Shown here: piece by piece, positions 23,629 through 64,000 of the stretch
Layout of the letters: every line of letters starts with the position of its first letter
How positions within the stretch are numbered: the stretch's first letter is position 1
DNA from: Perkinsela sp. CCAP 1560/9
Taxonomy: Eukaryota; Protista; Euglenozoa: Kinetoplastea
Length of the DNA: 64,000 bases
Assembly: GCA_965644495.1 (NCBI GenBank)
Contig: CBFFSA010000041.1
Span: 1-64,000 of the forward strand
Reading direction: 5' to 3'
Notes under the pieces: model-generated
Told to the model about the DNA's origin: nothing
Database searches by the model: none
The model's input: only the letters and a program-made list of their open reading frames with translations
Translations under genes and position numbers: made by a program

Positions 23629-23662
<34 letters not shown>

Positions 23663-23665
<3 letters not shown>

Positions 23666-23699
23666 TTAACGATAAAGATACAGTTTCTGTACCTTGTTG
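23663..23699 (+). other. Spliced-leader (mini-exon)-like sequence at the 5' end of B copy 1
   Basis: ACTTTAACGATAAAGATACAGTTTCTGTACCTTGTTG; carries the CAGTTTCTGTAC..TTG 3' half typical of kinetoplastid/diplonemid SL exons. Confidence 0.85.
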
Positions 23700-23735
23700 A
23701 ATTATTTTTCTTTCCCTATTTCTTTTATCCGGACA

Positions 23736-26700
23736 ATGAGGGAGGCTGATTCATGCGGCTCGACGACGATACGAGAAGATGACCTTTTTGCCCAAGAGGA
23801 GAAAACACACACGCCAGGCTCCTGGGACCAGTTTGAGGGTAATCAGCATCTTATCGCTGCAACTAGTACATACGATGAATCCCTCTACACGACGCCCATA
23901 CCAGAAAATATTACACCAGCCTGGCAAGACAAAATGGAAACGGCACTACAATCTTTGCACCGAGAGAAGCAGACACCTGACACGGGGATGATTTTATCGG
24001 CAGACGAAGAGAGAAATCATTCCAGCGTATCAAGAGACTGTGCCCCCAATACGTCTGGCAAAGGTCAAGAAGTAACAAGCCAAACCCCAGAGCGGTACGA
24101 ACCACATTCCATGGCCACAGCGAGGCTTCTCCCACGAAAAAGCCCTCTTTCTAGCCAAAAGTCGACGCCCAAAATTTTCGAGAGAGGGGTTAGTAAAGAT
24201 TCCAAGACTCGCCAACCAGCTAGACGAGACACAATGAGACGTCGCACCTGTCCAGTCGAAGTGTGCAACTGGAGCACCGCATCACACGGAGGGAAGTGGC
24301 AGGCCTACTACCATCACGTCGCAAGCCAACATAGCGATACTGTGCCTTCGGAATGGTGGGAAAAAGAAGGACGTTTCTTATGCCCCTCATGCGGCAAGCA
24401 CTATGATCACAATAAAAAAGCTTCCCATGAGGAAAAATGTCAAGACTCCTTGGGCTCTTACACCTCGTCGCTAACCTGTGAGCCAGAAACCGAAGAGGCT
24501 TCCATTTCCCAAATTTACAAGGATTCGCTCCCGTCTCTTGATTGTGTCTGCTCTTACGCCATCAACACATGCAAAGATGTACCATTCCGATGCAGACAAC
24601 AGTGGGCCTCCGTTTTGACTCAAACAATGGCTGCAGTGGTTAGAGAGAACTCGGTTGAGGCCTGGACACGCTTAGCGATGCTCCCAAAATGTGTCCTGCC
24701 CGCGCCCAAAAGAGGGGGACGAAAAGGAAATTCGTCCTATACCACGAAAACGAGCCAACGCATGGATCGCTGGGAATCCAGGGAATACGCGGCACTGTGG
24801 AACGAATCTGTTGCGCAAATGGTAAAGAAGCGGGAGAGGAGCGATGATGAGGAAGTGGACGAGTCCGGCAAGGCGGCGAAACGAGCCGAGTTGCTGGCCA
24901 GACAAGGGGAGTTTTCCCGTGCGATGGCAGCCCTTACAGCAGCACCGATGGCACCTGAATCCGAAGAAACTTACGAAAAACTCCAATCGAAGCACCCAGG
25001 TAGATTGCCTTTATCATCTTCCGTCACATTCCGACCCATAGAAGGAGAGCCTTTACATCTATCCGAAGGCGAAGTTGAAAAGGCACTACGCAGTTTCCGG
25101 CGCGGAACATCGGCTGGCACCATGGGCCTCCGCCCTGAGCATCTCCAGAGCGCCTTAGCAGCACACCCTGATGACAAGGTACAGCCGCTTTTCTATCTCA
25201 AGGAAGTCATGAACCTCTTGCTGTCCGGGAAAGGTTGTCTCCAAGTCCAGAAGTTCTTCGGCGGCGCCAGACTATGTGCCTTAGAAAAAGGAGAAAATGA
25301 TGTCCGTCCTATTGCTGCCGGCGAAACAATAAGGCGACTTGTGAGCAAAGCGGCCTGCTCCGCAGTAAAGGAAAAGGCAAGCAAACTACTCTGGCCTCAT
25401 CAATACGGAGTCGCAACACCTGCAGGGGCCGAACGCCTGATCCACCTGTGTAGGCACGTGATGGCCTCTCAGGCGGGAAGTTCTGATTTCACGCTATGTA
25501 AAGTGGATCTGCGAAATGCCTTTAACAACATCTCAAGAACTGCCTTTGCTGCACTTACGAGGGAGCACTTCCCGGAGCTCTCCCCGTGGGTTGAATGGTG
25601 TTACACCACCGAGAGTATTCTCACTTACGGTTTCCGTCAGATTTCTTCAAAGGAGGGTGTGCAACAAGGGGATCCGTTGGGTCCTTTACTTTTTTCCCTC
25701 GTCATGCAAATGGTTACTACCGAGATAGATCGACAACTTCCTGGTCTTCTTAAGCTTAATCTGTGGTATTTGGATGACGGCATTCTCGGGGGGAAGGCTC
25801 AAGACGTCAGACGAGCTTTAGACATCATCGAACGAGTCGGCCCACAGTGGGGCATCTTCCTAAACGCCAACAAGTGCGAGGCGATCACACATCCTGAATC
25901 CGCCGAACACCTGGACAGCTTCGGCAACATCCCGACGACTAAAAAGACAAGCGAGGGAAATTTTTCAATTTTAGGTAGCCCTGTAGGAACGACTGATTTC
26001 TGCACAGAATTTCTCCGTGAACACACCCTGTTGCCTGCTGAAGAATCCCTAGCCGCGATCGAATACATGGAAGACCCGCAAGTTTCCCTCGCACTCATCC
26101 GACAATGTGCTGGTTTCAGCCAAATGGCATATTCTCTTAGAACCACACCCACCAATTCCGTCCATGAGCTATGCGAAGAACTTGACACAGCAATACTACA
26201 TACCACGGAACGCTCTATATGTCCTTTAAATGAAGATGCTGCCGCACAAGTACAACGTCCAAAATCTTACGGTGGATTCGGGCTGCGCTCTTCAGCGATG
26301 CATGCCTCATCGGCGTACGTTTCCTCAGTCTCTTTCGCAGCGGATAAGGACAACTGGAACTCCCTCGACGCAAAAGATTTTGCTGATGCAGTACTGGACG
26401 TCAATTCACGAGCGGGCACCAGCGTCCTGGAAGAGAAAACCGGTCTAATTTCCCCTCAGCACGCTTCCTCTCTCTCTCACCTCAAAAAAGTACTGGGTCT
26501 CCGTGGATCAAAACGACCTCTCCCGGCGAATCTTCCCGTAGCACCACCCGGAGACACGACGACCCCTTACTTTGAACAAACGAAACTCGACCACGAGTTT
26601 TCATCTTCCAACGACCGAGTCGCACGCCAAAAGGTGCTCAGCCGTGCAATTTCTTCCCGCGAGTACACCGATGCATATCAGAAAGCTGATCCTCAAACGA

Positions 26701-27575
26701 GGGCACGTTGGATATCTCAATCTGGAAAAGGGGCAGGTGACTGGCTGTTTGTCACGCCCTCCAGGGAAAAGGGGCACGCCTTTACTAAAACGGAGTTCCG
26801 CACCCTGTGCACCTGGTGGCTAGGACAAAAAGTATATCCAGAAACACACCCCTGTCCCGTCTCAGGCTGCACGCTTCCGATGGGACCACAAGGAGACCAC
26901 GCATTGGTCTGTAAACACGACTACGGGATCTCTGCGAGGCATAATGCCTTGGCCCTCCAGTTCTTTGACGTTTGTCAAAAGGCCAATTTGTCTCCGAAAA
27001 GGGAGCACAGCCTCGGCAACAGAGGTCCAGGGGGGGCACTCACAAGACCAGGGGATGTGTTCCTTCCGAGCTACACGCTCGGTAAAGGCCTTGTCTTTGA
27101 TTTTGCGGTGACCCACGTCCAGCAACAGAAATATACGGACCTGGTCCGTTCTGCTGGCATGGTAGCTGCAGGGGCCTTCGCAGAGAAATATGCAACGAAC
27201 CACAAGCGTGGACAAAGGCAAGAGGCTATAGAGGCCGGGCATGATTTCACCGCCATGGTAGTGGAATCGTACGGATCATGGAGTCCGACGTCCCTCCATA
27301 TGCTGAAGAAGATCGCGGGAAAAAGAGCCGCAACATGTAAGGGTGATATGTCCGAGCAAGCGTCAATGTTTTTTCTTCTCCAGGACATGAACGTTACGCT
27401 CATGCGGTCTCAGGCACGAATGCTTGTAAGACGCATGGCAGACGTGTATATCCATGCCAGTCTCGCTTTACTGCACGAGGCACCCTCTGACACCACACCA
27501 AATCGTGCCAGCTGCGGACCGGCAGGAGCGATCGAGCCTACAGTGCCTATTCTCACGCCTCGCCTTCGTGAGTGA
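23736..27575 (+). CDS. B polyprotein: LsmAD-like, zinc fingers, RT, CCHC, RLE
   Basis: First ATG after the SL; GSWDQF..STYDESLYTT; CPVEVC..HH..H; WYLDDG; GDHALVCK..RHN; RPGD..FDFAVTH. Confidence 0.92.
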   Translation: MREADSCGSTTIREDDLFAQEEKTHTPGSWDQFEGNQHLIAATSTYDESLYTTPIPENITPAWQDKMETALQSLHREKQTPDTGMILSADEERNHSSVSRDCAPNTSGKGQEVTSQTPERYEPHSMATARLLPRKSPLSSQKSTPKIFERGVSKDSKTRQPARRDTMRRRTCPVEVCNWSTASHGGKWQAYYHHVASQHSDTVPSEWWEKEGRFLCPSCGKHYDHNKKASHEEKCQDSLGSYTSSLTCEPETEEASISQIYKDSLPSLDCVCSYAINTCKDVPFRCRQQWASVLTQTMAAVVRENSVEAWTRLAMLPKCVLPAPKRGGRKGNSSYTTKTSQRMDRWESREYAALWNESVAQMVKKRERSDDEEVDESGKAAKRAELLARQGEFSRAMAALTAAPMAPESEETYEKLQSKHPGRLPLSSSVTFRPIEGEPLHLSEGEVEKALRSFRRGTSAGTMGLRPEHLQSALAAHPDDKVQPLFYLKEVMNLLLSGKGCLQVQKFFGGARLCALEKGENDVRPIAAGETIRRLVSKAACSAVKEKASKLLWPHQYGVATPAGAERLIHLCRHVMASQAGSSDFTLCKVDLRNAFNNISRTAFAALTREHFPELSPWVEWCYTTESILTYGFRQISSKEGVQQGDPLGPLLFSLVMQMVTTEIDRQLPGLLKLNLWYLDDGILGGKAQDVRRALDIIERVGPQWGIFLNANKCEAITHPESAEHLDSFGNIPTTKKTSEGNFSILGSPVGTTDFCTEFLREHTLLPAEESLAAIEYMEDPQVSLALIRQCAGFSQMAYSLRTTPTNSVHELCEELDTAILHTTERSICPLNEDAAAQVQRPKSYGGFGLRSSAMHASSAYVSSVSFAADKDNWNSLDAKDFADAVLDVNSRAGTSVLEEKTGLISPQHASSLSHLKKVLGLRGSKRPLPANLPVAPPGDTTTPYFEQTKLDHEFSSSNDRVARQKVLSRAISSREYTDAYQKADPQTRARWISQSGKGAGDWLFVTPSREKGHAFTKTEFRTLCTWWLGQKVYPETHPCPVSGCTLPMGPQGDHALVCKHDYGISARHNALALQFFDVCQKANLSPKREHSLGNRGPGGALTRPGDVFLPSYTLGKGLVFDFAVTHVQQQKYTDLVRSAGMVAAGAFAEKYATNHKRGQRQEAIEAGHDFTAMVVESYGSWSPTSLHMLKKIAGKRAATCKGDMSEQASMFFLLQDMNVTLMRSQARMLVRRMADVYIHASLALLHEAPSDTTPNRASCGPAGAIEPTVPILTPRLRE

Positions 27576-32873: not shown

Positions 32874-35800
32874 ATGCCCACATCCGTTGAAGAGCAAAAT
32901 CCGACCTTCGAGGAGGAGGCGTCGTCTCACACACTTGGGTCCTGGGATCAATTTGCGGCAAACAAATCTTTAGCGAAGGGACCTAGCACGTACGATGAGC
33001 TAATCTACACCACAGCCCTCCCTAATGATATTCCTCAGGACTGGGAAAAGAGAACGGACGAAATCCTTCGAAGTATGAAGACGGCAACGCAGGACTCAAC
33101 GCCAGATTTGGGGCATGCGAATGAACTATCAAGTGAAAGAACCGAGGAAGAGATACACTGCAGTGTGCGTCGGGACGATGAACCTTCCCCTTTCCATTTC
33201 GAGGGAACGCACTCAAATTCACCCAGCCAATTACAAACTTCAAACAGGGCTGTGAAGGAGAGATGCCTGCGTCGAACAAGGGGAATGGAAGGTGCCGTTG
33301 ACACAGAGAACGCGATGATGTTTCCAGACCTCACGCCTACTGAACTTGACTTCACAATCACAACAAAACGCAAAGGTAGGAGAAAGAAGAAACGAATAAA
33401 ACGAACGGCAACGACGTGTACTGACGGTACCAACTCTTCAAGCCCCGAGGGTGACGAGCACGAAGACAGCGTGACACCTGAGCCCACTCAAAACGGTAAA
33501 CAAAAGCGCCGCCGAGACATAGCGAAAAGCTTCTCGAATTATTTTCCTACGACAGGTCACCGGACAGACAAAACACCAAGCGGCAAATCCCAACTTCCTC
33601 CGTCTGTAGCCGCATTCCGCAGCACGCCTCAGGACTCTTTGAAAACTTGCCCAGTTAAAGGGTGCGTGTGGAAAACACTCGCTCATGGCGGCAGGTGGCA
33701 AGCTTACTACAACCACGTAGCTACAAGACACGCGAATGAAGTGCCCGAATCCTGGTGGACGAACGAAGGGCGCTTTCTCTGCCAGAAATGCGGGCGACAT
33801 TACGAAGAAGGCAAACGAGCAACACACGACAACGCTTGCAAAGGAACCTCGACTGACTCTGTAGCCAATCCCGCGAATAACTTGACGCAGAGTTCATTGG
33901 ACCACGGTTCGCGCAGCACCGATGTCTCACAGAGTGTCCAACCTCTTCCTTTACCATCGCTTTCTGATATTTGCATGACTCCTATCAACACTTCTAGGGA
34001 TGTTCCATTCCGATGCCGCTACCAATGGGCGAAAACGCTCACCGATGTATTATCCTCCGTAGCCAGCGAGAACTCCGTAGCGGCATGGACCCGTCTCGGC
34101 ATGCTGCCTAAATGCGTTCTACCGGCCCCGAACCGCGGGGGGCGCAAAGGTCGTCTTTCTTATGCCTCACATGTGACAAAAAGCCTAGAAAGGTGGGGAA
34201 AAGGGGAATTTACCGCTCTGTGGATTGAAGCGACCAAAAACAACACGAAGTCGTCGCACCCATCAACCAAAGACCAAGATCAAGACCAGGAGCTTGCGCA
34301 AGAAGTAAGAAGGGCAAAAGAACGATGCGAAAAACTTGTACGCCAGGGTGAAGTCTCTCGTGGAATGAGTGCACTAACGGCGGCACCCTTTGCACCTGAC
34401 AACGACGAAACGTACTGCAAGTTGATGGCAAAGCATCCCACTCGTGCGCAGGACTGCATGCTTCAAGATCTCCCGTACCCTAACGCACCTCCCTTGAAAG
34501 TAAACGAAGAAGAAGTTAAGCACGCTTTGGGCAGCTTTCGCAAGGGATCATCTGGCGGAACGATGTCGCTGAGAGCTGAGCACCTTCAGATAGCACTACG
34601 TGCCCACGTGGACGAGAAAGTACACCCTCTCACCGCTCTTACAGACGTAGTCAATGTGCTTCTTTCTGGAAAAGCTCCATTCGAGATTCAGGAACGTTTC
34701 GCTGGGGCCAGATTGTGTGCACTTCAGAAAGGAGAATGTGACGTCCGACCTATAGCCGCAGGCGAGACAATCCGTCGTTTGGTTGGTAAAGTGGCATGTC
34801 TAACAGCCAAGAAAAAAGCTAGTCGCTTGTTTAAAGGAATACAGTATGGGGTTGCCACGCCAGCCGGATCGGAGAGGGTGATCCACCTCTGCCGACAGAC
34901 TATGTCCCGCCATGCCGATGACACGAACTTTGTGCTATGTAAGGTGGACCTAGCGAACGCGTTCAATAGAGTATCCAGATCTGCGTTCATCGCCTTACTT
35001 CGCAAACATTTTCCAGAATTGTCAGCATGGGTGGAGTGGACCTACTCCACGGATAGTCTCCTAACTTACGGTTCCAGAACTCTTCCATCATCCGAGGGGG
35101 TTCAACAAGGGGACCCCCTAGGGCCTCTCCTTTTTTCCCTCGTAATGCTCGAAGCCGCGAAAATGATCAAAGAAGCACTCCCAGGCAGTCTCCAGCTTCA
35201 CCTCTGGTACCTCGACGACGGGGTAATAGCCGGTAAGGCCGAAGACGTCAGTTTCGCTTTAGAGACTCTTTCTCGAGTTGGTCCTAAGTGGGGTCTTCAC
35301 ATCAATACCTCTAAATGCGAAATAATAACGAACCCTGCCTCGGCACACCAAACTGCTCTTTTTTCCGATATTCCGGAACCCAAGATAAACCGCGAAGGAA
35401 ATTTTGACATTCTTGGGAGCCCCATAGGCTCTGCTCAACATTGCATAGATTTCCTTACGACACACGCCGTGGAACCGGCAGAAGAGACCCTGGAAGCTAT
35501 AGAAATGCTCGAAGATCCTCAAATTGCCTTGTCATTGATCAGACAGTGTGCGGGTTTTTGTCAAATGGTCCATTCGCTTCGAACTACCCCACCACATGAG
35601 CTTTCTGCACTCTGTCAGCGCCTTGATGAAGCAGTCCTCCATGCGTATGAATGGAATATATGCCCGCTTAGCTCCTCAGCTCGATCACAAGTTCAACGCC
35701 CGAAACGGTATGGAGGTTTTGGTCTCCGATCTGCATCTGCGCACCGCTCAGCGGCGTACGTGTCTTCAGTTGCTTTTGCTGCAGAGACGGATCGTTGGCT

Positions 35801-36815
35801 ACCGTCAGATGCAGAAGGATTCTCTTCCGCAGTCCTGGACATCAATCGCCGGAGCGGAGGCCCCGTAGTTGATCCGGACACGGGAAGAGCATTAGAGGAG
35901 ATCAGCTCCCCTTTTCCGACAGGATCTAGTCAAAGTACAGAAACGGACAATTCTTGCACCCCCCGTCAACGTGCCTTGAGCGACGCAATCTCGGCGCACG
36001 AATTTTCATGTGCGTACGCAGCGGCGGACAGTAGCACTCGCGCGAGGTACACCTCTCAGACTGGAGATGGGGCCAGCAGCTGGGCATTTTGCATCCCATC
36101 AACAGAGCTTGGCCACGCTTACACACCCACAGAATTCCGCGCCCTCTCCAGGTGGTGGTTAGGTGCCAAGGTCTACAACGAGTTGAGCACGTGCCCAATT
36201 AACACATGCCAACAACCTCTCGACCTCGAAGGAAACCATGCAGTGTCTTGCAAAAGTGGGAATGGACTGATCTCCCGCCACAATGCGCTCATTACACAAT
36301 TCACCGACACGTGCTCCAAGGCGAATTTATCACCTTCACGTGAGGTAAGCCTGGGGAACCTAGGGCCTGGCGGCTGTCCCACGAGGCCGGGCGATGTCTT
36401 TATTCCGGGCTATGAGAAAGCTCAAGGTCTGGTGCTTGATTTTGCTGTCACCCACGTTCAGCAACCTAAATACACGGACTTAGTCCGCAACGCTAACGGG
36501 GTGGCGGCAGGATCATTTGCGGAGCACTACGCCGCTTCTCACAAGGTGAAAGAGAGAGAGGAGGCGGAACAAGCAAAACATGTGTTTGTTGCCATGGTGG
36601 TAGAATCATATGGTGCTTGGAGTGCAAGTGCCCTATCAATCCTTAGATGGGTTGGGAAGCATCGCGCCTCATGTTCCCAGGGGACTCTATCTCAAGAAGC
36701 AGCTACCCGTCAGCTGCTTCAAGAGCTTAACCTCACCCTGATGCGTTCTCAATCGAGAATGCTTGTCTCACGCATGCCGGCTGAAGATCCACAACCGGCA
36801 CTTATTTTGCAGTAG
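32874..36815 (+). CDS. D polyprotein (1313 aa): LsmAD-like, basic patch, zinc fingers, RT, RLE
   Basis: GSWDQFAAN..STYDELIYTT..EEEIHCSVRR; KRKGRRKKKR; WYLDDG; RPGD..VLDFAVTH. Confidence 0.92.
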   Translation: MPTSVEEQNPTFEEEASSHTLGSWDQFAANKSLAKGPSTYDELIYTTALPNDIPQDWEKRTDEILRSMKTATQDSTPDLGHANELSSERTEEEIHCSVRRDDEPSPFHFEGTHSNSPSQLQTSNRAVKERCLRRTRGMEGAVDTENAMMFPDLTPTELDFTITTKRKGRRKKKRIKRTATTCTDGTNSSSPEGDEHEDSVTPEPTQNGKQKRRRDIAKSFSNYFPTTGHRTDKTPSGKSQLPPSVAAFRSTPQDSLKTCPVKGCVWKTLAHGGRWQAYYNHVATRHANEVPESWWTNEGRFLCQKCGRHYEEGKRATHDNACKGTSTDSVANPANNLTQSSLDHGSRSTDVSQSVQPLPLPSLSDICMTPINTSRDVPFRCRYQWAKTLTDVLSSVASENSVAAWTRLGMLPKCVLPAPNRGGRKGRLSYASHVTKSLERWGKGEFTALWIEATKNNTKSSHPSTKDQDQDQELAQEVRRAKERCEKLVRQGEVSRGMSALTAAPFAPDNDETYCKLMAKHPTRAQDCMLQDLPYPNAPPLKVNEEEVKHALGSFRKGSSGGTMSLRAEHLQIALRAHVDEKVHPLTALTDVVNVLLSGKAPFEIQERFAGARLCALQKGECDVRPIAAGETIRRLVGKVACLTAKKKASRLFKGIQYGVATPAGSERVIHLCRQTMSRHADDTNFVLCKVDLANAFNRVSRSAFIALLRKHFPELSAWVEWTYSTDSLLTYGSRTLPSSEGVQQGDPLGPLLFSLVMLEAAKMIKEALPGSLQLHLWYLDDGVIAGKAEDVSFALETLSRVGPKWGLHINTSKCEIITNPASAHQTALFSDIPEPKINREGNFDILGSPIGSAQHCIDFLTTHAVEPAEETLEAIEMLEDPQIALSLIRQCAGFCQMVHSLRTTPPHELSALCQRLDEAVLHAYEWNICPLSSSARSQVQRPKRYGGFGLRSASAHRSAAYVSSVAFAAETDRWLPSDAEGFSSAVLDINRRSGGPVVDPDTGRALEEISSPFPTGSSQSTETDNSCTPRQRALSDAISAHEFSCAYAAADSSTRARYTSQTGDGASSWAFCIPSTELGHAYTPTEFRALSRWWLGAKVYNELSTCPINTCQQPLDLEGNHAVSCKSGNGLISRHNALITQFTDTCSKANLSPSREVSLGNLGPGGCPTRPGDVFIPGYEKAQGLVLDFAVTHVQQPKYTDLVRNANGVAAGSFAEHYAASHKVKEREEAEQAKHVFVAMVVESYGAWSASALSILRWVGKHRASCSQGTLSQEAATRQLLQELNLTLMRSQSRMLVSRMPAEDPQPALILQ

Positions 36816-37528: not shown

Positions 37529-37736
37529 ACGATAAAGATACAGTTTCTGTACCTTGTTGAATTAATTTTTCTTTCCCTATTTCTTTTATCCGGACAATGA
37601 GGGAGGCTGATTCATGCGGCTCGACGACGATACGAGAAGATGACCTTTTTGCCCAAGAGGAGAAAACACACACGCCAGGCTCCTGGGACCAGTTTGAGGG
37701 TAATCAGCATCTTATCTCTGCAACTAGTACATACGA
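37525..37736 (+). pseudogene. 5' 212 bp of a third family B copy (shortened SL 37527-37559), fused to G through CGA microhomology
   Basis: Matches 23667-23875 with a few differences; junction ACATA-CGA-AGGCAGG. Confidence 0.88.
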
Positions 37737-40267
37737 AGGCAGGACTTCCGTGTGTTATCGAACCGCGAATTCACTCCTCATTTTATTGTACAAAGTGTAA
37801 ATGCTCTATTTCTGCGGAGGTTTCTGACCAACATCCATGTAAGGCGCGCAGGATTCGATCTGGCCCCGACCTCGCTATCATGTGGCCCCATATGGGAGAA
37901 GTCCTCTATGATTTCACAGTGGTTCACACTTGCTGCAACAGTTACAAGAAACAAACAAGCAACTACCTACTGCAGCAAGCCCAGGAAAGGAAGTTCAAGA
38001 AATATGTGACAGAGAAAGGTGTGGACAGTGAGGCATTTCGTTGCATCGCCGCCTCAGATTGTGGTGTGTTGCACAACGACACAAAACAACTATTAAAGGC
38101 GTTGGCTCAGCGCGCGAATCGAAAATATGAAAACGTGCGTGAGGCTTTTCAGCTGGAACTTGAAAAGCTATCGGCTTACACGGTAGTGTCTCAACTCCGA
38201 GATTACATCACCGATGAAAAGTGGATTGGGAGTTTACGACTCTAAAAGAGTTCACTACCACACGTATATCTCCGTACAAATAAGTATTGATTAGTTGCCT
38301 TCGAATATATTAGGTCCTTTCGAATGTATTAGATACTGCTACTTCTGCATTGATTCTTCATCACGTTTGACAACAATTGGCGCGTATACAATAATTGATC
38401 CGGGAACTGTTCTTTTTTACTTTGAGGCTTTGCTGGTTTCGAGGGGACAAGTGTCATCCATGCTGTTTTATGCTGTTTTATGTGGTCCAACATATATTCG
38501 ATTATTGAAAATTGTTGATCTTACCATGTGAATGGAACGATGCGTATTGCATCGGTACACGAACATTGCCCCGTAGTTTGTTCAAATTAGTTTCTACGGA
38601 TAGTTGCCGGGGATTTCCAGACGGCGAGTAAGTTCAAAAAAAAAAAAAAAAAAAAGCGATGACCGTAAATTTCTGGTAGAGTGAAGTTCGAGTTGTGTCA
38701 TCGCAACTTTCCTTTTGCGAGTGGAAAAAGGTTATAAGTCACTAGAGTAAAATAATGTATAGTATAGTATGCTAAAAGTATAATTACATGGTTCCCCCCG
38801 GAGGGGGCAAAATCAGGTACATATATGTATATGTGCCCCGTAGGGCCACGGTCAAAGAATAAATATTTTCTTCAAGCAATTCTTTCCGTAAACTCTAAGG
38901 ATAACCGATCACCTAGGCGACCCTTGGAAACACGAAGGCAACACCAACAGACTATTAAGGACAGCACCCTCGGCGAACAAACGCCGACACGCTCTCAGCC
39001 AGCCCACCAGATCCAATCACCTCCAAAGCATTCCTCCGGCACAAAACCCATGACTAGCGAAACTGGTTGTTCCGAAGCACAATCGGACGGTAGGCGCGAA
39101 GACTTTGGCAACAGATATGCCCCACGAAACGGAAGCGACAAGCCCCCACCACTTCCGCAGAGCGCTCCCAAACACCGCATCTGTCCTGCTGAAGGATGCG
39201 CCTGGCGCACGATTGCACATGGAGGGTCTTGGCAAGCATTTTATAACCACGTAGCGTACCACCACAGTACCGGCGTCCCGGCTGCATGGTGGGCAGCGGA
39301 AGGCAAGTTCCTTTGTGAAACGTGCGGCAAACACTACACGCTCAACCGTAAAACTACGCACCCGAAGACCTGCATCGGTCAATCAAGTCAAGCAGCACAA
39401 ATGTCAGTAGATATTTTTTCGCAGCACTCCATCGTAACAGAAACCGCCGAATTACCTACTTTGGCAAGTGTCTGCACACTCGCGAAGAGCACATGTAAAG
39501 ACGTGCCCCACCGATGCCGTCAGCTGTGGGCGGAGATCTTAACCTCGGCAATTTTCTTCAACCTCGGCAATTTTCTTCATTTCAGTGCTCCGGATGCCAG
39601 AATAGTGTAACCGAGGAAAATCTCACAGAACACCAGCGCAGCTGTCGCGGCAGTGTCCGCAGATCTGGGCCCGACCTTATGATCTACTGGGCAGACGGTC
39701 CGATGTATTATGACCTAACTGTAGTTCACGAGTTTTCAGCAGCTCACATAAACAAAACGCCTCAAAAAATGATGAACGAAGTCATCACGAAGAAACGCGA
39801 CCGTTACGTAACTTCTGGGATGATTGCGAATGATCGTTTCATGTGTATCCCTGTCCTTTCGGGTGGAGCGCTACATAAGCATACAAAACGTCTATTAACA
39901 GCTTTAGCAGATCGTTGCCTTATTTAGAATTCAGGAGCGATGTCTGACCCAGATGGAGCGATAACTCTAGAGCGCCCAAAACTCCCTTTCAGCTCGGGCT
40001 GTCGATCCACCAGGTTCAATTTCTCCTTACGCTTTTTAAGACTGAGAGGATAAAAATGGAGGCTCTCCAAGAAGACGTGCAGAGCGGCAGTATTAGGGAA
40101 GTTGGAAAGAAGTGTGAAGGTGAGTAGTCAAAGGCTGCGAGTTGCAGCAAACAGATCGTGCGTCCTTCTAATGTTGAAGGCTTGAAAGTAGTAGTGCTTG
40201 ATATGCTTTTTTTTGTTTACTAAAAGTTTACGAAAAGAATTGTACAATGGAAATTTTGATTTCTGAG

Positions 40268-40304
<37 letters not shown>

Positions 40305-43300
40305 TTAACGATAAAGATACAGTTTCTGTACCTTGTTGAATTATTTTTCTTTCCCTATTTCTTTTATCCGGACAATGAGGGAGGCTGATTCATGCGGCTC
40401 GACGACGATACGAGAAGATGACCTTTTTGCCCAAGAGGAGAAAACACACACGCCAGGCTCCTGGGACCAGTTTGAGGGTAATCAGCATCTTATCGCTGCA
40501 ACTAGTACATACGATGAATCCCTCTACACGACGCCCATACCAGAAAATATTACACCAGCCTGGCAAGACAAAATGGAAACGGCACTACAATCTTTGCACC
40601 GAGAGAAGCAGACACCTGACACGGGGATGATTTTATCGGCAGACGAAGAGAGAAATCATTCCAGCGTATCAAGAGACTGTGCCCCCAATACGTCTGGCAA
40701 AGGTCAAGAAGTAACAAGCCAAACCCCAGAGCGGTACGAACCACATTCCATGGCCACAGCGAGGCTTCTCCCACGAAAAAGCCCTCTTTCTAGCCAAAAG
40801 TCGACGCCCAAAATTTTCGAGAGAGGGGTTAGTAAAGATTCCAAGACTCGCCAACCAGCTAGACGAGACACAATGAGACGTCGCACCTGTCCAGTCGAAG
40901 TGTGCAACTGGAGCACCGCATCACACGGAGGGAAGTGGCAGGCCTACTACCATCACGTCGCAAGCCAACATAGCGATACTGTGCCTTCGGAATGGTGGGA
41001 AAAAGAAGGACGTTTCTTATGCCCCTCATGCGGCAAGCACTATGATCACAATAAAAAAGCTTCCCATGAGGAAAAATGTCAAGACTCCTTGGGCTCTTAC
41101 ACCTCGTCGCTAACCTGTGAGCCAGAAACCGAAGAGGCTTCCATTTCCCAAATTTACAAGGATTCGCTCCCGTCTCTTGATTGTGTCTGCTCTTACGCCA
41201 TCAACACATGCAAAGATGTACCATTCCGATGCAGACAACAGTGGGCCTCCGTTTTGACTCAAACAATGGCTGCAGTGGTTAGAGAGAACTCGGTTGAGGC
41301 CTGGACACGCTTAGCGATGCTCCCAAAATGTGTCCTGCCCGCGCCCAAAAGAGGGGGACGAAAAGGAAATTCGTCCTATACCACGAAAACGAGCCAACGC
41401 ATGGATCGCTGGGAATCCAGGGAATACGCGGCACTGTGGAACGAATCTGTTGCGCAAATGGTAAAGAAGCGGGAGAGGAGCGATGATGAGGAAGTGGACG
41501 AGTCCGGCAAGGCGGCGAAACGAGCCGAGTTGCTGGCCAGATAAGGGGAGTTTTCCCGTGCGATGGCAGCCCTTACAGCAGCACCGATGGCACCTGAATC
41601 CGAAGAAACTTACGAAAAACTCCAATCGAAGCACCCAGGTAGATTGCCTTTATCATCTTCCGTCACATTCCGACCCATAGAAGGAGAGCCTTTACATCTA
41701 TCCGAAGGCGAAGTTGAAAAGGCACTACGCAGTTTCCGGCGCGGAACATCGGCTGGCACCATGGGCCTCCGCCCTGAGCATCTCCAGAGCGCCTTAGCAG
41801 CACACCCTGATGACAAGGTACAGCCGCTTTTCTATCTCAAGGAAGTCATGAACCTCTTGCTGTCCGGGAAAGGTTGTCTCCAAGTCCAGAAGTTCTTCGG
41901 CGGCGCCAGACTATGTGCCTTAGAAAAAGGAGAAAATGATGTCCGTCCTATTGCTGCCGGCGAAACAATAAGGCGACTTGTGAGCAAAGCGGCCTGCTCC
42001 GCAGTAAAGGAAAAGGCAAGCAAACTACTCTGGCCTCATCAATACGGAGTCGCAACACCTGCAGGGGCCGAACGCCTGATCCACCTGTGTAGGCACGTGA
42101 TGGCCTCTCAGGCGGGAAGTTCTGATTTCACGCTATGTAAAGTGGATCTGCGAAATGCCTTTAACAACATCTCAAGAACTGCCTTTGCTGCACTTACGAG
42201 GGAGCACTTCCCGGAGCTCTCCCCGTGGGTTGAATGGTGTTACACCACCGAGAGTATTCTCACTTACGGTTTCCGTCAGATTTCTTCAAAGGAGGGTGTG
42301 CAACAAGGGGATCCGTTGGGTCCTTTACTTTTTTCCCTCGTCATGCAACTGGTTACTACCGAGATAGATCGACAACTTCCTGGTCTTCTTAAGCTTAATC
42401 TGTGGTATTTGGATGACGGCATTCTCGGGGGGAAGGCTCAAGACGTCAGACGAGCTTTAGACATCATCGAACGAGTCGGCCCACAGTGGGGCATCTTCCT
42501 AAACGCCAACAAGTGCGAGGCGATCACACATCCTGAATCCGCCGAACACCTGGACAGCTTCGGCAACATCCCGACGACTAAAAAGACAAGCGAGGGAAAT
42601 TTTTCAATTTTAGGTAGCCCTGTAGGAACGACTGATTTCTGCACAGAATTTCTCCGTGAACACACCCTGTTGCCTGCTGAAGAATCCCTAGCCGCGATCG
42701 AATACATGGAAGACCCGCAAGTTTCCCTCGCACTCATCCGACAATGTGCTGGTTTCAGCCAAATGGCATATTCTCTTAGAACCACACCCACCAATTCCGT
42801 CCATGAGCTATGCGAAGAACTTGACACAGCAATACTACATACCACGGAACGCTCTATATGTCCTTTAAATGAAGATGCTGCCGCACAAGTACAACGTCCA
42901 AAATCTTACGGTGGATTCGGGCTGCGCTCTTCAGCGATGCATGCCTCATCGGCGTACGTTTCCTCAGTCTCTTTCGCAGCGGATAAGGACAACTGGAACT
43001 CCCTCGACGCAAAAGATTTTGCTGATGCAGTACTGGACGTCAATTCACGAGCGGGCACCAGCGTCCTGGAAGAGAAAACCGGTCTAATTTCCCCTCAGCA
43101 CGCTTCCTCTCTCTCTCACCTCAAAAAAGTACTGGGTCTCCGTGGATCAAAACGACCTCTCCCGGCGAATCTTCCCGTAGCACCACCCGGAGACACGACG
43201 ACCCCTTACTTTGAACAAACGAAACTCGACCACGAGTTTTCATCTTCCAACGACCGAGTCGCACGCCAAAAGGTGCTCAGCCGTGCAATTTCTTCCCGCG

Positions 43301-45196: not shown

Positions 45197-48100
45197 CTTT
45201 AACGATAAAGATACAGTTTCTGTACCTTGTTGAATTATTTTCTTTTTTCCTTTCCCCTTTTTGGTTCAACTAGTATGTCCTGCCGCGAACGTCCATGTAC
45301 ACACTCCTCAGAAAATGAAGCGTCCTTCGCAAGAATGGTGAACACAGACGACGTTACATTGAACGAGGCGGAGAAATCACACCTTCTTGGTAGTTGGAAT
45401 CAATTTGAGGGCAACAGACATCTCATCTCAGCTCCCAGTACCTATGACGAAAGTCTGTACACAACGGAAATCCCGAGGAATATCCCTGCAGAATGGCTAC
45501 GCCTCGCTGAAAAAAAATCAGACGACCGCGAAACACCGGACACGGGACACCACCTAGCCGAGAATGAGGAAATACAACACTGCGCAGTACAACGAAAGGG
45601 TACGACAGCCAACCTTGCAGCTAGTATTTCTACTCTGAAATCAGGGCCAGCAATCAACGCTGCACTGAAGGATGCAATATCACGTCAACAGCGCAATGCG
45701 GATGGGATCAAAGGAGTTTCAAAGACGGATAACCGATCACCTAGGCGACCCTTGGAAACACGAAGGCAACACCAACAGACTATTAAGGACAGCACCCTCG
45801 GCGAACAAACGCCGACACGCTCTCAGCCAGCCCACCAGATCCAATCACCTCCAAAGCATTCCTCCGGCACAAAACCCATGACTAGCGAAACTGGTTGTTC
45901 CGAAGCACAATCGGACGGTAGGCGCGAAGACTTTGGCAACAGATATGCCCCACGAAACGGAAGCGACAAGCCCCCGCCACTTCCGCAGAGCGCTCCCAAA
46001 CACCGCATCTGTCCTGCTGAAGGATGCGCCTGGCGCACGATTGCACATGGAGGGTCTTGGCAAGCATATTATAACCACGTAGCGTACCACCACAGTACCG
46101 GCGTCCCGGCTGCATGGTGGGCAGCGGAAGGCAAGTTCCTTTGTGAAACGTGCGGCAAACACTACACGCTCAACCGTAAAACTACGCACCCGAAGACCTG
46201 CATCGGTCAATCAAGTCAAGCAGCACAAATGTCAGTAGATATTTTTTCGCAGCACTCCATCGTAACAGAAACCGCCGAATTACCTACTTTGGCAAGTGTC
46301 TGCACACTCGCGAAGAGCACATGTAAAGACGTGCCCCACCGATGCCGTCAGCTGTGGGCGGAGATCTTAACTAGCGCTTTGAAGGCAGCAGTACAAGAAA
46401 ACTCAGTAGCGACATGGACACTCCTTGCCATGCTCCCAAAGTGTGTGTTACCGGCCCCTCGACGCGGAGGGCGTAAAGGCTACATGGCGTACTCATCCCA
46501 CGTTCGAAAGTGCATGGAGCGATGGATGGCAAAGGACTACACTCAGTTGTGGAAAGAGGCAGCCGCTAATAGACGACAACGAAACCCTGACCCCATTTCG
46601 GAACAACATGAGGCCCAGAAAGCCGTCATCCGCGCAGAACTTCTAGTCAGACAAGGTGAATTCTCTAGAGGTATGGCTGCCTTAACCGCAGCGCCGATGG
46701 CAGATGAAAACGAAGAAACATATGCGAAGCTGTTGGAGAAGCATCCGGCACGTCAAACTACTACGGAAGCCCTCGCCGACCTTCCACCACACGTCAAACA
46801 TTTGAACCTCGAAGAATCCGATATTAAAGTAGCCATAAACAGTTTTCGTCGAGGATCTTCAGCAGGTACGATGGGTCTCCGCCCGGAACACTTACAATCC
46901 GCGCTTCTTTCCTACGAAGACAAGAATGTTCACCCGCTTCAGGAACTCACAAACCTAGCTAATCATCTTCTTTCTGGCAAAGCACCCATCGAAGTACAAG
47001 CATATTTCGCAGGTGCGCGACTATGTGCGCTCAAGAAGGGGGAAAACGACGTTCGCCCTATCGCAGCGGGGGAGACTATTCGTCGGTTAGTGAGCAAGGC
47101 CGCATGCAGTAGTGTCCGAATGAAAGCGGGGAAATACTTTGAAGCACAACAATATGGAGTGGCCACCCGAGCAGGGGCAGAACGTATCATTCACCTTTGT
47201 AGGCTTGCAATGGACACTGACACAACAAATTCCGATATAGTTTTATGCAAAGTTGATTTGTCCAACGCATTTAACAACGTTAGCCGTGACGCATTCATCA
47301 GTCTCACCAGAGAGCACTTCCCGGAATTGTCCAGATGGGTAGAATGGTGCTACGTCGAAACCAGTAGCTTAACTTACGGGCACCGTTTCGTACCGTCCGC
47401 GGAAGGGGTACAACAGGGCGATCCCCTCGGTCCTCTTCTCTTTTCCTTAGTCATGTTGGAGGTTACCAAACAAATTCAGTCGTACACGGAACTTCTTCTA
47501 AACCTGTGGTACTTAGACGATGGAGTTTTTATAGGGAAAGCAGAAGAAGTAAGAAAAGCCCTCGACATACTTGATCACCTCGGACCAGGTCAGGGACTAC
47601 ACCTCAATAGCAAGAAATGCGAGATCATCACACTACCCTCATCTGCACACCAAACATCTCTTTTCCCAGATATACCAAAAGACAAGCAAAACACAGAAGG
47701 AAATTTCGACATCCTAGGAAGCCCTATCGGATCCCACAAACACTGCGCCGAATACCTCATGACCAATGCGATCGAACCAGCAGAAGATACTTTAGTTGCT
47801 TCCAGTTTAATTGAGGACCCGCAGGTCGCCATGGCACTGATACGACAATGTGCTGGCTTTTGTCAACTGGTCTACGCCCTACGTACAACACCCCCACAAT
47901 GCATACAACGCGTTTGCGAACATCTAGACAATTCACTGTTGAGCACAGCTGAGGAAATACTTTGCCCACTGAACGCCCCTGCCCGCGCTCAGATCCAACG
48001 CCTGAAGAGACACGGAGGTTTCGGTCTGCGTTCATCGGAAATGTACTCGTCTTCAGCTTACGTAGCATCTGTGGTGTTCGCAGCAAGCAAGGACGGATGG

Positions 48101-48660
48101 AATCCACTGGACGCGGAAGGTTTTTCACCTGCCGTCAACGACGTGAACGCAAAAGCCGGAGGCACTCTCGTAGATCCCGAAACGGGTCGTTTCCTTTGCC
48201 CCACCACCCAACAGCGCGACCTATCACATCCCTCTTTTCCCCCAAAGCCACCCATTCACTCTTCCACACAGGTCGATACAGCCCGCGAGCCATCAGACAC
48301 CGGACCTTTTTTAGATGCTGACCCGCCGTTGGGCGCTGACCTTGACATAGATATTGACCCGCCAGAATGGGACGAAAGTATCATCCCACGTCAGAAAGAT
48401 ATCATCCGCGCTATAGGGGAAAGGGAGTTTAATATAGCATACTGTTCCGCTGATACACGAACGCGAACCAGATGGGTATCACAATCAGGGAAAGGGGCTA
48501 GCAGTTGGGCATTCGTCACCCCATCGAAGGACCTGGGCTATGCATTCAAACCCGCGGAGTTTCGAACCTTGTGTCGATGGTGGTTGGGGGTGGATGTATA
48601 CGGAGAAACTCGTCCATGTCCCTCGGATGAATGCAAACTCCCTCTGGGTCCTGAAGGGGA

Positions 48661-51600
48661 TCCAATCCAATCCAATCCAAAATACCGACAAAGTCGGCTA
48701 AAATACTTAGCACTTTCACATCAAACACTTCCATCTCTATCACCTCCAAATTCAGAGTTTTTGTGCCTCCAATACTAGAGCACACAAACCGCATAAAGTA
48801 ATGGAATATAAAAACTTCCTCAAGGCATATTCTAGCACACGTACGGAGATACACAGCAAGCACTCACACTTACTTTGGTGTCCCCCTTCCACCGCCAGTT
48901 CTCGTAACTTTCTGGCGAATAACAACTCTTTCCTCTGCCTCACGTTTAGGCGCGGATGAGGCTTTCACTGCACGCTGACTTTTCGCGTTTCGTTTTGCAA
49001 ACTGCTGAGCAGTGGTTTGCGAATTTGAAGACTTTCTTCTCTTTATTTCAGGTTCGCTTACTTTCTTTCTAGATGCAGACAATGCGAGCGAGTCTGCTGC
49101 CTCGTTCCAAGGATTTCCCGAGTGAGATTTAACTTTACACATGTATATTTGTACCCCTTGACCCTTCAACGCGCGTAATTTATGGTCGATTTGATCCATC
49201 AAGTCTCCATTTGCAATTCCGATGTAGCCTACAACGCGAAAACGTGATCTTAAACTGTGAAAATATTGCCAAACGTAACAAGAATCAGTATGAAAAACGC
49301 AAGAGAGTGATCCTTCTGGAATTTTCGAAATAGCCTCACGAAATGCTAATAATTCGGCCCTCTCACTTGTTCCCACCTCCAACGGAATAGAGTAGTAATC
49401 AGGGTCACCCTTAATTTTCAAGAAAACAACACCAGCACCGCTACGCACCGTTTGTGTTCCGCGCAAAACTCTCACTGAACCATCCGTGTAGAAATGTATA
49501 GATTTAAGTTTGGGGAATGGCACGCTAGATTCTTCAATGAATTGTAGCTCTTTATAACTCTTGTTCTTGATAGCTGTGGCTTTCAATGCTTTCCATTTTT
49601 TTGTAGTAGCACGCTCGTAGTCAACCACTGGCTCAAGTGAAAGTTTTAGCTTTTCGGTGAGACGAAACCAATGTTCTCGATCTGTAGCATAAACCAATGC
49701 CTCTTCTAAAGTTATACCCAAGTCTGAAATACATGCTTCGCTTGGAGAAGGACGTCTCGAATTAGATTTATGTCTCCATTGCACCAGCTCTCGATAGTTC
49801 GAAGAATGTCTCAGCATGTGTCCGGTAAGTTTGGCTCTCTGAACTTTGTGAATGGTGGAAAATCGTGATGTATTTACGTAGAGAGAGTCTGTAGGATAGC
49901 AAAAACCATACTCGTCCAATTTGTTGCACTGAGATGCGATTCTTCTCATCGTATTAATTTCGACATCAATCGAACGCAACATTTTTTGAGAAATGTGCAA
50001 TGCGCCTGAACCAAAGTTCAGAATAGGGTATATAAGCACGTCGTATAGTCTGAGTTTAAGATGAGAGCTTAAAGATGAAATCCATATTCCTCGCATGCGG
50101 GCAAATGAGGACCAAGCAAGTTTCAAACGATCTTTGATTGTAGATGATGTTTCATTGTCTTGAAGATGCCCTAGATGTCGATACGAATCTACTCTAGGTA
50201 CCTTTTCCAGTTCTTTTGTCTGGAGATTCTTATTTGAGCCGGCAACCTTACCGAAAGGTATCCATGCGGTTTTTGTAACACCTACAGCTATCTTTAGGTT
50301 CGCCAAGGAAGCATCCTTTGACGTTTCGTCAATCATTTCCTGGAGACCTTCCTTTGTATCACTGAACAATACAATGTCATCTGCAAAATCAATATCAGAA
50401 ATTCGTTTTTCCTGTAGGTTCCGTTTTCTTGTCCCGCTTGAACTCAAAAGTAATCCGCGATTTTCCAGGTCCAGCGACTTATTAAGAATGCGATCCATAA
50501 CCATCACGAAAAGGTAAGGGGCCAACACATCCCCTTGGAGTATTCCTGTAGTTATCGGAAAAGAATCTGTGATACCAAAAGGTGTGCGGACTACTCCTTT
50601 CAGATTTGAGTACAATGACATGATCATTTCGGATAGACGAACGCCCACGTGAAATGCTTTCAGACTCGCTTTTATCGCAGCGAAAGATACAGATGGGAAT
50701 GCCTTTGCGAAATCAATGAACGCTACACAAACACCTTTATTCCGAAATGCCTTGGACTTTATTTCATTCATGATTGTTTGCGCACCAGCGGTAGATCTAT
50801 TTTGACGAAAACCGTATTGATTGTCTCGAAGAAGTGGTTCAACGCTGGGGCGGATGCGAGTAAGAATCATAAAATTCATCAGCTTGACTATACTGTTTAC
50901 AAGGCAAATAGGGCGCCAGTTTGAAAGCTGCGATAAATCCCCTTTCTTTGGAATAGGTATTTGAAGAATGACTTTCCATGATGCTTCGGTAACGCCTGTT
51001 TCATGCACTTCATTGATTAGCTCCAGCAATAAATCTCTAAAATCCTGATGTGTCGAAATTGCTTGTAAGGCCTCCATGGGAATACCGTCCCCCCCTGGGG
51101 CTCTATTCTTCCCGAAGTGCGAAAGCGAATAAAAGAGCTCCTCGGCAGTAAACTTGCCATCTGAAATTGGTATAAAGGGAAGATGTACTTCATTAAAAGA
51201 AATGTTGGGGTCTCCCCGATCGTACCCTGTGAAATTCATAAAGTGCTTACGTACCTCTTGGAGCTTATTTTTCTTTGCATTACCAGGCGTAGTGAAGGAC
51301 ACGCGGTAGGTTCCGCACACTTGCCGTAGTGTTCTCCATGGGTTCGAGTGGTTTTTCTTAATACTTTTTTCGAGCTCTACACATTCATTGGTGATTTCCG
51401 TCTCGACTTCTGCTCTATGCTCCTTAACCAGGCTCTTAAAAGTTGCTATACTTTTACTCTGTTGGTATAACTCTCTAAGCCCATGAGCCATGGACTCTCG
51501 TGCGGGCTTTCTATCAGAATTCCGTTTTTGTGGTCTGTGGAGCTCTCTGGCTGCTTGTAGAATGCATTTTGAGAGAGCTGTCCACTTGGTTGGTGCATCG

Positions 51601-63400: not shown

Positions 63401-64000
63401 TTCCTCAATGGAGAAGGGCAAGCAGCGTCGAGAAGCCGTAGAGGCAGGATGCGACTTTACGGCCATGGTTGTCGAAAGTTATGGCGCCTGGAGCCCCAGC
63501 GCTTCAGCCGTGCTCCGCAAAGTCGGTGAGAGGTGTTCGCACGCCTCGGGGGGTCTACTTTCGGAAGGTGAGGCAACGAGCCGAATCTTCGCTGAACTAA
63601 ACATAACCCTTATGCGCTTTCAAGCGCGCATGATGGTTGCTCGTTCACCTTCCGAAGACCCCATCGCAACTCTGGAGGAATAGCCTCCAGAGCGGCCCGA
63701 GGCCGATCGAGCCGACAGTGCCTATCCTCACGCCTCGCTTTCACGAGCAAGGTACCCCAATGTGAGACAGGTATGGATTCGGAACATTCATCCGAATCCG
63801 GCGATCAAAACCCAACTTCGTGACCGTGCCGCTGTCGGCACATGCCCGCGCCTGCGCCCTCCCGCATAACAAGGGAAGGGTTCCCAAGCCAGGCCGTGGA
63901 GAGGTCGAGAGACCCGGTCCGAAGCGCGCACTGCTGGAAGAAGGGGTGGAGCACTCGCGGATTGATTTCTGGGGGGAAGTGAGGGAAAGAGGAGGGCAAA

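Follow-up and report, generated by a model that had tools for sequence, protein, structure and literature searches.

Why does a retrotransposon carry a piece of ataxin-2? The question is raised by a 64,000-nucleotide stretch of DNA from Perkinsela sp. CCAP 1560/9 (contig CBFFSA010000041.1, positions 1 to 64,000 of the forward strand; hereafter the window), in which four families of a long interspersed nuclear element (LINE), designated A, B, D and E, encode a short conserved block near the N-terminus of their reverse transcriptase (RT) protein. An earlier reading of this DNA, referred to below as the original prediction, had assigned the block to LsmAD, the signature domain of the ataxin-2 family and the second of the domains conserved in ataxin-2, Pbp1 and PBP1 proteins; the family is linked to spinocerebellar ataxia type 2, to the risk of amyotrophic lateral sclerosis, and to mRNA activation in trypanosomes. 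The analysis presented here leaves almost no room for doubt that the block is a genuine ataxin-2/Pbp1-type LsmAD domain (Pfam PF06741), and what is new is an R2-like LINE with a probably host-derived LsmAD accessory domain.

A conserved block in a variable N-terminus

The block was located by a six-frame scan of the window for the motifs W-[DNE]-Q-F and STY-x-E. It occurs at the six sites listed in the original prediction (23817, 40456, 37678, 32937, 45389 and 55533) and nowhere else in the window:

23817..24040, plus strand: LsmAD domain of element B (motif scan; 25.6 bits against the Pfam LsmAD model for the block alone, cut-off 25)
40456..40679, plus strand: LsmAD domain of the second B copy (sequence equal to that of the first B copy, dN = dS = 0 against B; part of a duplicated segment)
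37678..37740, plus strand: truncated B-type LsmAD block ending past the STY motif (motif scan; profile positions 1-27 only)
32937..33177, plus strand: LsmAD domain of element D (motif scan and alignment; Pfam LsmAD is the top match, 20.8 bits, E 5.6e-4)
45389..45597, plus strand: LsmAD domain of element A (motif scan and alignment; Pfam LsmAD 22.9 bits, E 1.2e-4)
55533..55745, plus strand: LsmAD domain of element E (motif scan and alignment; Pfam LsmAD 22.9 bits, E 1.2e-4)

Between families A, B, D and E the block extends over 85-91 aligned columns, with 27 invariant positions and a mean column identity of 62%. A conservation profile was derived from an alignment of seven full-length element proteins, of which three are encoded in the window and four elsewhere in this genome, on other contigs. 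Mean pairwise identity lies at 0.39-0.45 within the block, compared with 0.05 in the 20-70 residues that precede it, which cannot be aligned, and 0.13-0.26 in the poorly alignable linker that follows; it climbs back to 0.5-0.8 in the zinc fingers, the RT and the nuclease. The LsmAD block is an island of conservation amid unalignable flanks, well past chance, much as the original prediction had described it.

Identity of the block

When the window blocks of families A, B, D and E were compared with Pfam in isolation, LsmAD was the top match for all four (20.8-25.6 bits; E 1.7e-5 to 5.6e-4). With the gathering cut-off of this model at 25 bits, only the block of element B passes (25.6 bits); those of D, A and E (20.8-22.9 bits) fall below it, yet still have LsmAD as their top match, and the whole element proteins of the window score weakly, at 13-17 bits. 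Sister subfamilies of the same genome give stronger matches. Two of their ORFs (open reading frames), P0178 (1329 residues) and P0173 (1291 residues), combine LsmAD at 34.8 and 35.7 bits, respectively, with the RT domain RVT_1 at 63-64 bits in one protein, and further subfamilies exceed the LsmAD cut-off at 30.8 (P0016), 29.7 (P0005) and 26.4 bits (P0003). Furthermore, the W-D-Q-F-x-x-N part of the block precedes the start of the Pfam model and is nearly invariant in cellular ataxin-2 proteins too; it therefore constitutes extra evidence for LsmAD that the Pfam score omits.

The assignment was also approached from the opposite direction. A profile built from the four window blocks alone was searched against 1.84 billion representative proteins at E<=1e-3, and it matched 544 of them. 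Among the non-element matches that were scanned with Pfam, 71 of 73 contained LsmAD and 41 of the 73 contained SM-ATX; a further 47 scanned matches included 42 with LsmAD, bringing the overall count to 113 of 120. The consensus of the matched proteins reads G-x-W-D-Q-F-x-A-N ... STYDE-x-LYTT ... AREIE ... DEE-x-x-Y-S-x-V-x-R. In a profile-profile comparison (hhalign) of 20 element blocks with 40 cellular LsmAD domains, the two were colinear over 84 columns with a probability of 99.8% and an E-value of 7.9e-29. Across 67 element and cellular sequences, Q, F, N, Y and E show no variation at all, and W, E, T, T, E and V hardly any. Both the isolated-region scan and the profile-profile comparison had been named as checks in the original prediction, and together with the reverse search they uphold its central identification. 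A word-indexed protein search with the element N-terminal region matched the element alone, so that the exhaustive profile search was needed.

The window families depart from canonical LsmAD in places, such as the replacement of its 'EERG' by 'TPDTG'. Subfamilies of the P0014, P0016, P0018 and P0178 type, which retain the central RAE-x-IA-x-x-I helix, form a bridge from the window blocks to canonical LsmAD. No solved LsmAD structure was returned from the PDB by sequence, whether the query was the element profile or a canonical LsmAD. An AlphaFold2 model of the element B N-terminus contains five short helices (pLDDT 75, pTM 0.31), in agreement with published reports that describe LSmAD as flexible and partly helical.

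The protein that carries the domain

The LsmAD domain forms the N-terminal module of the only protein encoded by an R2-like, restriction-like endonuclease (RLE)-type lineage of non-long-terminal-repeat (non-LTR) retrotransposons. The order within this protein is LsmAD, a variable linker rich in Ser, Thr, Lys and Arg, two zinc fingers, a conserved region, the RT, another linker, and a CCHC finger with a P-G-D...D nuclease-type motif. The two N-terminal zinc fingers, the CCHC and the nuclease-type motif were read from the sequence as motifs; the RT is recognized by Pfam (RVT_1, 57-67 bits in element proteins). The solved structures closest to the element RT are R2 proteins, with the RT of element D matching 8gh6 at an E-value of 1.9e-7, and no named trypanosomatid element was found among the best 120 RT relatives. 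In the window, the principal copies are the following:

23736..27575, plus strand: complete ORF of element B, with LsmAD, linker, two zinc fingers, RT (residues 532-736 of the listed ORF), and CCHC plus restriction-like nuclease motif (ORF list; RVT_1 65.5 bits)
32874..36815, plus strand: complete ORF of element D, 1313 amino acids (ORF list, Pfam; R2 structure match)
45275..48778, plus strand: ORF of element A, with a C-terminal nuclease region that is cut off or disrupted (ORF list, Pfam)
55401..56165, plus strand: 5' part of element E, reaching the first zinc finger (ORF list, Pfam; break point located in the sequence)
60480..63683, plus strand: 3' part of element E, with the second zinc finger, RT and nuclease (RVT_1 63.3 bits)

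Element E is split at about 56166 by a nested LINE that encodes an apurinic/apyrimidinic endonuclease (APE), an RT and an RNase H, and it resumes at 60480; its LsmAD frame reads on into the Exo_endo_phos, RVT_1 and RNase_H domains of the nested protein. The remaining element ORFs of the window (at 90, 4900 and 28764) belong to 5'-truncated copies that start after poly(A) tracts. A segmental duplication is also present: segments 22186-27575 and 38825-44214 correspond, with the second B copy and its upstream neighbour identical to the first where compared, and the second B ORF is disrupted between 41544 and 41563.

Outside the window, a protein identical to the product of the element B ORF (P0001) is encoded on ENA contig ERZ24900291:ctg2829l, and all six of the element proteins that were traced lie on contigs of that same assembly (ERZ24900291) with RT ORFs downstream. 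A housekeeping pyrophosphatase encoded on a further contig of the assembly is 100% identical to an MMETSP transcript, as expected of a cultured marine protist, and the leader type is that of a kinetoplastid or diplonemid. The block is present in every full-length copy examined and in at least ten diverged subfamilies of the one genome.

Features by which an ataxin-2 orthologue would be recognized are missing from these proteins. In Pfam, no element protein matches SM-ATX or LSM at E<=1, and neither Pfam nor a motif scan detects the PABP-binding motif PAM2; the same motif scan, extended to HNPY (MKT1-binding), FDF and polyQ, gave nothing relevant.

Spliced leaders at the 5' ends

The original prediction had further proposed that the element RNA begins with a spliced leader. 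The 38-nucleotide leader found here holds the kinetoplastid/diplonemid-type core ACAGTTTCTGTAC, which occurs six times in the window against an expectation of 0.09, and in all 13 cases, from the window and two other contigs, the leader 5' end precedes an LsmAD block, so that this part of the proposal holds. The relevant positions are:

23662..23699, plus strand: spliced leader that opens element B, immediately behind the poly(A) tract (23633-23663) of the copy upstream
32791-32828, 37522-37559, 40301-40338, 45195-45232, 55319-55356: further leaders after poly(A), in the same arrangement
23633-23699, 32763-32828, 37498-37559, 40272-40338, 45171-45232, 55301-55356: poly(A) plus leader junction stretches of the window, with others on contigs L001 and L002

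Read from its upstream boundary, a full-length copy consists of the poly(A) of the preceding copy, the 38-nucleotide leader, a T-rich 5' untranslated region (UTR) of 35-70 nucleotides, the ATG, 20-70 variable residues, LsmAD, the rest of the ORF, a 3' UTR and poly(A). Every full-length copy opens with a complete leader immediately after the poly(A) tail of another copy, with 1-4 extra bases that vary at the junction. The 5'-truncated copies likewise start right after poly(A), at 28009, 28168, 28522, 28672, 37268, 44648 and 55097. The copies are piled tail to head, as if the poly(A)/T tract of the older copy were the target.

No remainder of a leader gene flanks the 3' ends of the copies. Together with the whole leader at the 5' end, this absence shows that mature trans-spliced mRNA was the template. 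The leader thus arrived with the RNA, and the copies are not insertions into spliced-leader RNA genes. The label of CRE/R2-group element given by the original prediction is borne out in its R2 half, by the anatomy and the RT structure matches; placement within CRE is unproven, the copies not lying in spliced-leader RNA genes. In one copy on contig L002, the normal 5' leader is faced head-to-head by an inverted leader fragment (positions 2917-2960), which may have arisen through a template switch or a hairpin when the second strand was synthesized.

The arrangement of these 5' ends bears directly on whether the block belongs to the element at all. It could be imagined as the exon of a host gene beside inserted elements, or as a chance motif, a notion for which the modest Pfam scores of single blocks, and nothing more, can be cited. 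Leader, short 5' UTR, ATG, block, zinc fingers and RT are, however, joined in one unbroken ORF in many copies on several contigs, the real PBP1 gene of the host is located elsewhere, and the profile statistics (544 matches; hhalign E 7.9e-29) are decisive. Such an artefact is refuted.

Selection on the domain

Synonymous divergence (dS) is saturated between most subfamily pairs. In the few pairs for which it could be computed (NG86), the dN/dS ratio of the block ranges over 0.08-0.36; one example is a pair of subfamilies on contig L002, with a block dN of 0.21 and a dS of 2.5. Among 20 element sequences representing about ten lineages, 14 columns of the block are invariant. The low ratios, the invariant columns and the unalignable flanks together show that the block has been under purifying selection during the diversification of the family.

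These data also address the thought that LsmAD is a mere passenger, gained through chance template switching onto a PBP1 mRNA and functionless in the element. The central helix is indeed degenerate in families A, B, D and E, and three of the four window blocks score under the Pfam cut-off, as might be expected of a relic. However, a functionless segment should not have survived, at a dN/dS of 0.08-0.36, in ten or more subfamilies that are saturated at synonymous sites, nor should it hold its 14 invariant columns in 20 element sequences beside a linker that cannot be aligned, nor be found at 13 of 13 full-length 5' ends. A passenger origin without function is therefore very improbable and close to being refuted.

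Probable origin from the host

The host possesses a canonical PBP1 (P0025, with SM-ATX and LsmAD) in the same assembly, situated among genes for COG4, PRP38 and TruD (locus L006, positions 6001-8155; ENA ERZ24900291:ctg3964l). Its gene call ends right after LsmAD, and a PAM2-like motif and a Pro/Tyr-rich tail follow downstream in other frames; the frame change is either an assembly frameshift or an intron, and the reading frames were read separately, with the pieces left unjoined. A second host LsmAD gene, P0030 (locus L007, positions 6001-7083), encodes 360 residues with the domain at 265-347, lacks a recognisable Sm domain, and shares a P-L-P signature: after LYTT, P-[IL]-P is common to the elements and to both host genes (P0025 and P0030), in place of the L-D of other lineages.

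Several comparisons link the element domain to these genes. Per domain, host PBP1 matches the element profile with 73 bits, compared with at most 51 bits for the canonical SM-ATX plus LsmAD proteins of other species; the only other cellular proteins near this value are a metagenome protein, P0023 (76 bits), and host P0030 (63 bits). By BLASTP, host PBP1 is the best cellular match of most element subfamilies (element B, 44% identity over 84 residues, E 2e-20), and P0023 is the top match for some. In an IQ-TREE phylogeny of 80 LsmAD domains, 29 of them from elements, calculated over 89 columns, the 29 element sequences form one clade (support 99/98), and a wider clade (98/95) unites them with host PBP1 and a single metagenome protein; neither the PBP1s nor the multi-LsmAD proteins of diplonemids fall within it. 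The original prediction had asked for a tree against host PBP1, and this is the grouping that it gave.

The single element clade and its grouping with host PBP1 suggest one capture from the host. More precisely, these sequence relationships strongly suggest a single capture, with an LsmAD gene in the lineage of the host as its source, and, with moderate confidence, that the donor was probably the host's own canonical PBP1. It is likewise strongly suggested that the capture took LsmAD alone, leaving behind the Sm domain, PAM2 and the disordered tail.

Diplonemid proteins with PDZ, LsmAD and RRM domains were considered as the closest relatives and ranked lower: their E-values of 1e-19 to 1e-23 sum over two or three domains, and per domain they reach about 46 bits against 73 for host PBP1. 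This PDZ, 2-3 LsmAD, RRM family comprises P0008 (Diplonema papillatum DIPPA_14428), P0017, P0019, P0028 and P0029. LsmAD proteins that lack Sm were also found elsewhere (P0032; P0072 and P0135; P0123), among them a fungal triple-LsmAD kinase, an ankyrin-LsmAD protein and a CCCH-zinc-finger-LsmAD protein. Like the element, such proteins use LsmAD as a portable module that works by itself, and the diplonemid ones also share with it the histidine in EE-x-x-H-S-x-V. They differ in carrying no RT, and the diplonemid ones form a clade of their own (100/99) apart from that of the elements and host PBP1.

Sister elements with MLLE

The nearest outgroup elements are three euglenozoan metagenome proteins, P0197, P0199 and P0250 (the last from locus L009), which are 42-44% identical to the element over RT and nuclease. 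Each carries a PABP-type MLLE domain (Pfam PF00658) in the same ORF, at 46.8, 49.3 and 27.4 bits, respectively, placed either after the nuclease or before the RT, and none of them carries LsmAD. On the contig of P0197 (locus L008), a spliced-leader 3' half comes first and poly(A) last. The MLLE domain of PABP binds the PAM2 motif of PBP1/ataxin-2. With LsmAD in the element and MLLE in its relatives, the lineage has thus borrowed from both partners of the PABP-PBP1 complex, which supports a link to the same PBP1/PABP messenger ribonucleoprotein (mRNP) node. The MLLE elements are alike in possessing an accessory poly(A)-mRNP module and, in at least one case, a leading spliced leader and polyadenylation, and differ by having MLLE in place of LsmAD. 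A full-text literature search for MLLE in retrotransposons gave nothing relevant. Other relatives of the element carry PDZ (P0255) or ubiquitin (P0211).

What the domain may do

The original prediction had supposed that the element protein mimics Pbp1 and thereby recruits the host mRNA-activating or granule machinery, in which Pbp1 works with MKT1, LSM12 and PABP, or finds poly(A) RNPs as templates. Published mapping places partner binding elsewhere: yeast Mkt1 binds Pbp1 residues 491-549, and human DDX6 binds the LSm domain, not LSmAD. Since these sites lie outside LsmAD, and since the element has no Sm domain, PAM2 or HNPY, the named partners are not supported. The remaining part of the proposal fares better, in that it is plausible that the element enters the PBP1/PABP mRNP through whatever LsmAD binds, as the MLLE-carrying sisters would also suggest. 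LSmAD has been reported to help the LSm domain beside it to fold and to bind RNA, LSm plus LSmAD outperforming LSm alone on U-rich RNA. The only ligand candidate with experimental support is an ataxin-2-type LSm domain, not MKT1, PABP or DDX6 through their mapped sites; the direct ligand of the element domain would probably be the contact of the host PBP1 LsmAD.

The best overall explanation, which we favour with some reserve, is that the captured LsmAD docks the element protein on the PBP1/PABP mRNP. LsmAD would act as a protein-protein docking module and, as the first part of the element protein to leave the ribosome, it could tether the nascent protein to the PBP1/PABP complex where this sits at the poly(A) end of the mRNA under translation. 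Docking of this kind would provide cis binding of its own RNA to an element that lacks an ORF1 protein, and would bring within its reach the poly(A) 3' end needed for target-primed reverse transcription. The mRNA-stabilizing or activating effect of the PBP1 complex could be an added gain; in trypanosomes, tethered PBP1 activates reporter expression. A loose helical model such as that predicted for element B suits a docking segment that folds upon its partner. The mechanism itself is put forward tentatively and could well prove otherwise. More doubtful still is its extension to the wider group, according to which spliced-leader-led, ORF1-less euglenozoan LINEs may have repeatedly captured pieces of both PABP-PBP1 partners to dock the nascent RT protein co-translationally on its own poly(A) mRNP.

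A number of observations weigh against docking by a captured host domain. Human LSmAD alone is poorly folded and binds neither RNA nor DDX6; in flies, Lsm/LsmAD is neither necessary nor sufficient for mRNA targeting and is thought to bind other RNA-binding proteins; and the literature gives no function or binding partner for isolated LsmAD. In the element itself, the central helix of canonical LsmAD (AERIAREIE) is degenerate in window families A, B, D and E, and the AlphaFold2 model of the N-terminus consists of helices without a compact fold (pTM 0.31). As for the source of the domain, an approximately unbiased (AU) test over the 89 columns does not reject (p 0.33) a tree in which the elements group with the multi-LsmAD family of diplonemids. 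Finally, the element family comes so far from one genome and from sequence alone, and no element protein is found among the host's MMETSP transcriptome clusters.

Two other functions for a conserved LsmAD must be weighed. In the first, the domain is a decoy or counter-defence, competing with the LsmAD of host PBP1 for its ligand and so keeping element RNA from PBP1-dependent granules or repression, or disturbing a pathway that restrains the element. A host-derived and conserved LsmAD is expected here just as it is for docking, a single domain without PAM2 or the granule-forming disordered tail is a typical dominant-negative fragment, and the structured and disordered domains of ataxin-2 are reported to play opposing roles in granule assembly. 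A decoy, however, need not be fused to an RT or act in cis, the MLLE of the sister elements fits recruitment better, and there is no evidence of PBP1 restricting retroelements in Euglenozoa. A decoy is for these reasons considered unlikely.

In the second, LsmAD and the zinc fingers together would help to bind the element RNA or an A-rich DNA target, replacing a chaperone of the ORF1 type. The domain does lie in the N-terminal region, which in R2-type elements is home to the DNA/RNA-binding zinc fingers; new copies are found directly after the poly(A) tracts of older ones; and the better binding of U-rich RNA by LSm plus LSmAD would be in keeping with such a role. Yet the element has no Sm fold, and the LsmAD block is acidic rather than basic, which makes direct nucleic-acid handling quite improbable. 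Docking on the PBP1/PABP mRNP is the reading that is retained.

Should it be correct, co-translational docking would be a previously unrecognized route to cis RNA binding, and the ligand of LsmAD could be identified through the element, whose domain offers a simple bait for finding the LsmAD partner. That a selfish element took LsmAD alone and kept it under purifying selection argues that LsmAD is an autonomous module. Seen alongside the MLLE relatives, it suggests that these elements locate their own polyadenylated RNA with components taken from the poly(A) mRNP of the host.

Relation to known elements and proteins

The element domain resembles cellular LsmAD of ataxin-2, Pbp1 and PBP1 in its G-x-W-[DN]-Q-F-x-x-N and STYDE-x-LYTT motifs, in the central helix of some subfamilies, and in its acidic EE-x-x-[HYF]-S-x-V-x-R end. 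Unlike in those proteins, it stands alone at the N-terminus of an RT protein, which has neither SM-ATX ahead of the domain nor PAM2 or a disordered tail behind it.

With R2-type elements and the CRE clade (SLACS, CZAR, CRE1/2), the element has in common a single ORF, N-terminal zinc fingers, RT, C-terminal CCHC plus nuclease motif, poly(A), and an association with the spliced leader in a euglenozoan. The published anatomy of CRE elements comprises RT, RLE, zinc fingers and repeats, and no LsmAD. When compared by anatomy and insertion site, the two also differ in that CRE elements insert at a fixed site in spliced-leader RNA genes, whereas the copies described here carry the leader at their own 5' end.

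Human L1 depends on a poly(A) tract and on PABPC1; NeSL-1 is a spliced-leader-targeting element with an extra protease domain. The idea of using the poly(A) mRNP for cis RNA binding, or of adding domains to RLE-type LINEs, is shared, but in these elements the host factors are recruited in trans, or the domains carried are unrelated. No LINE of the L1 or NeSL-1 kind is known that encodes part of ataxin-2 or PABP.

LsmAD and RT were found in one protein solely in this element family among the best 150 of the 544 profile matches. A weak RVT_1 match in P0010 had been a candidate for an independent fusion; it is a rearranged copy of the same family. The full-text literature on LsmAD and retrotransposons yielded nothing relevant (Repbase and Dfam being outside the search), in keeping with the original prediction that no CRE/R2-group element with this domain is known, and no paper was found in a literature search with the spliced-leader string. 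A 2026 survey of ataxin-2 chimeric proteins describes many fused domains and no reverse transcriptase, and both the Diplonema genome paper and a 2025 survey of the trypanosomatid mobilome report SLACS/CRE-type elements without such a domain. The precomputed database annotation of P0178 reads 'LsmAD (weak), RVT_1'; the signal is present in public data and undescribed.

Other features of the window

A second, unrelated LINE family of the ingi/L1 type, with APE endonuclease, RT and RNase H, is present in several copies:

10000-14268, minus strand: APE-type LINE copy
48870-53003, minus strand: APE-type LINE copy
14180-17239, plus strand: APE-type LINE copy
~56166-60284, plus strand: APE-type LINE copy nested in element E, in frame with it and giving rise to a spurious 1664-residue ORF

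A perfect tandem repeat of 18 nucleotides, about 1.1-1.3 kb in length, adjoins the end of an APE-type LINE at 52982-54318, and one of its strands translates as LILIKR repeated.

Three poly(A) tracts are each followed by an identical 50-nucleotide sequence (4731-4780, 22017-22066 and 38656-38705), whose ends (GCGATGAC ... GTCATCGC) are self-complementary. Nearby lie ORFs of 261-271 residues (3507-4322, 22186-22971 and 38825-39610), for which Pfam gives no match. The 50-nucleotide sequence and the ORF near it are probably a further retroposon, or the 5' end of one.

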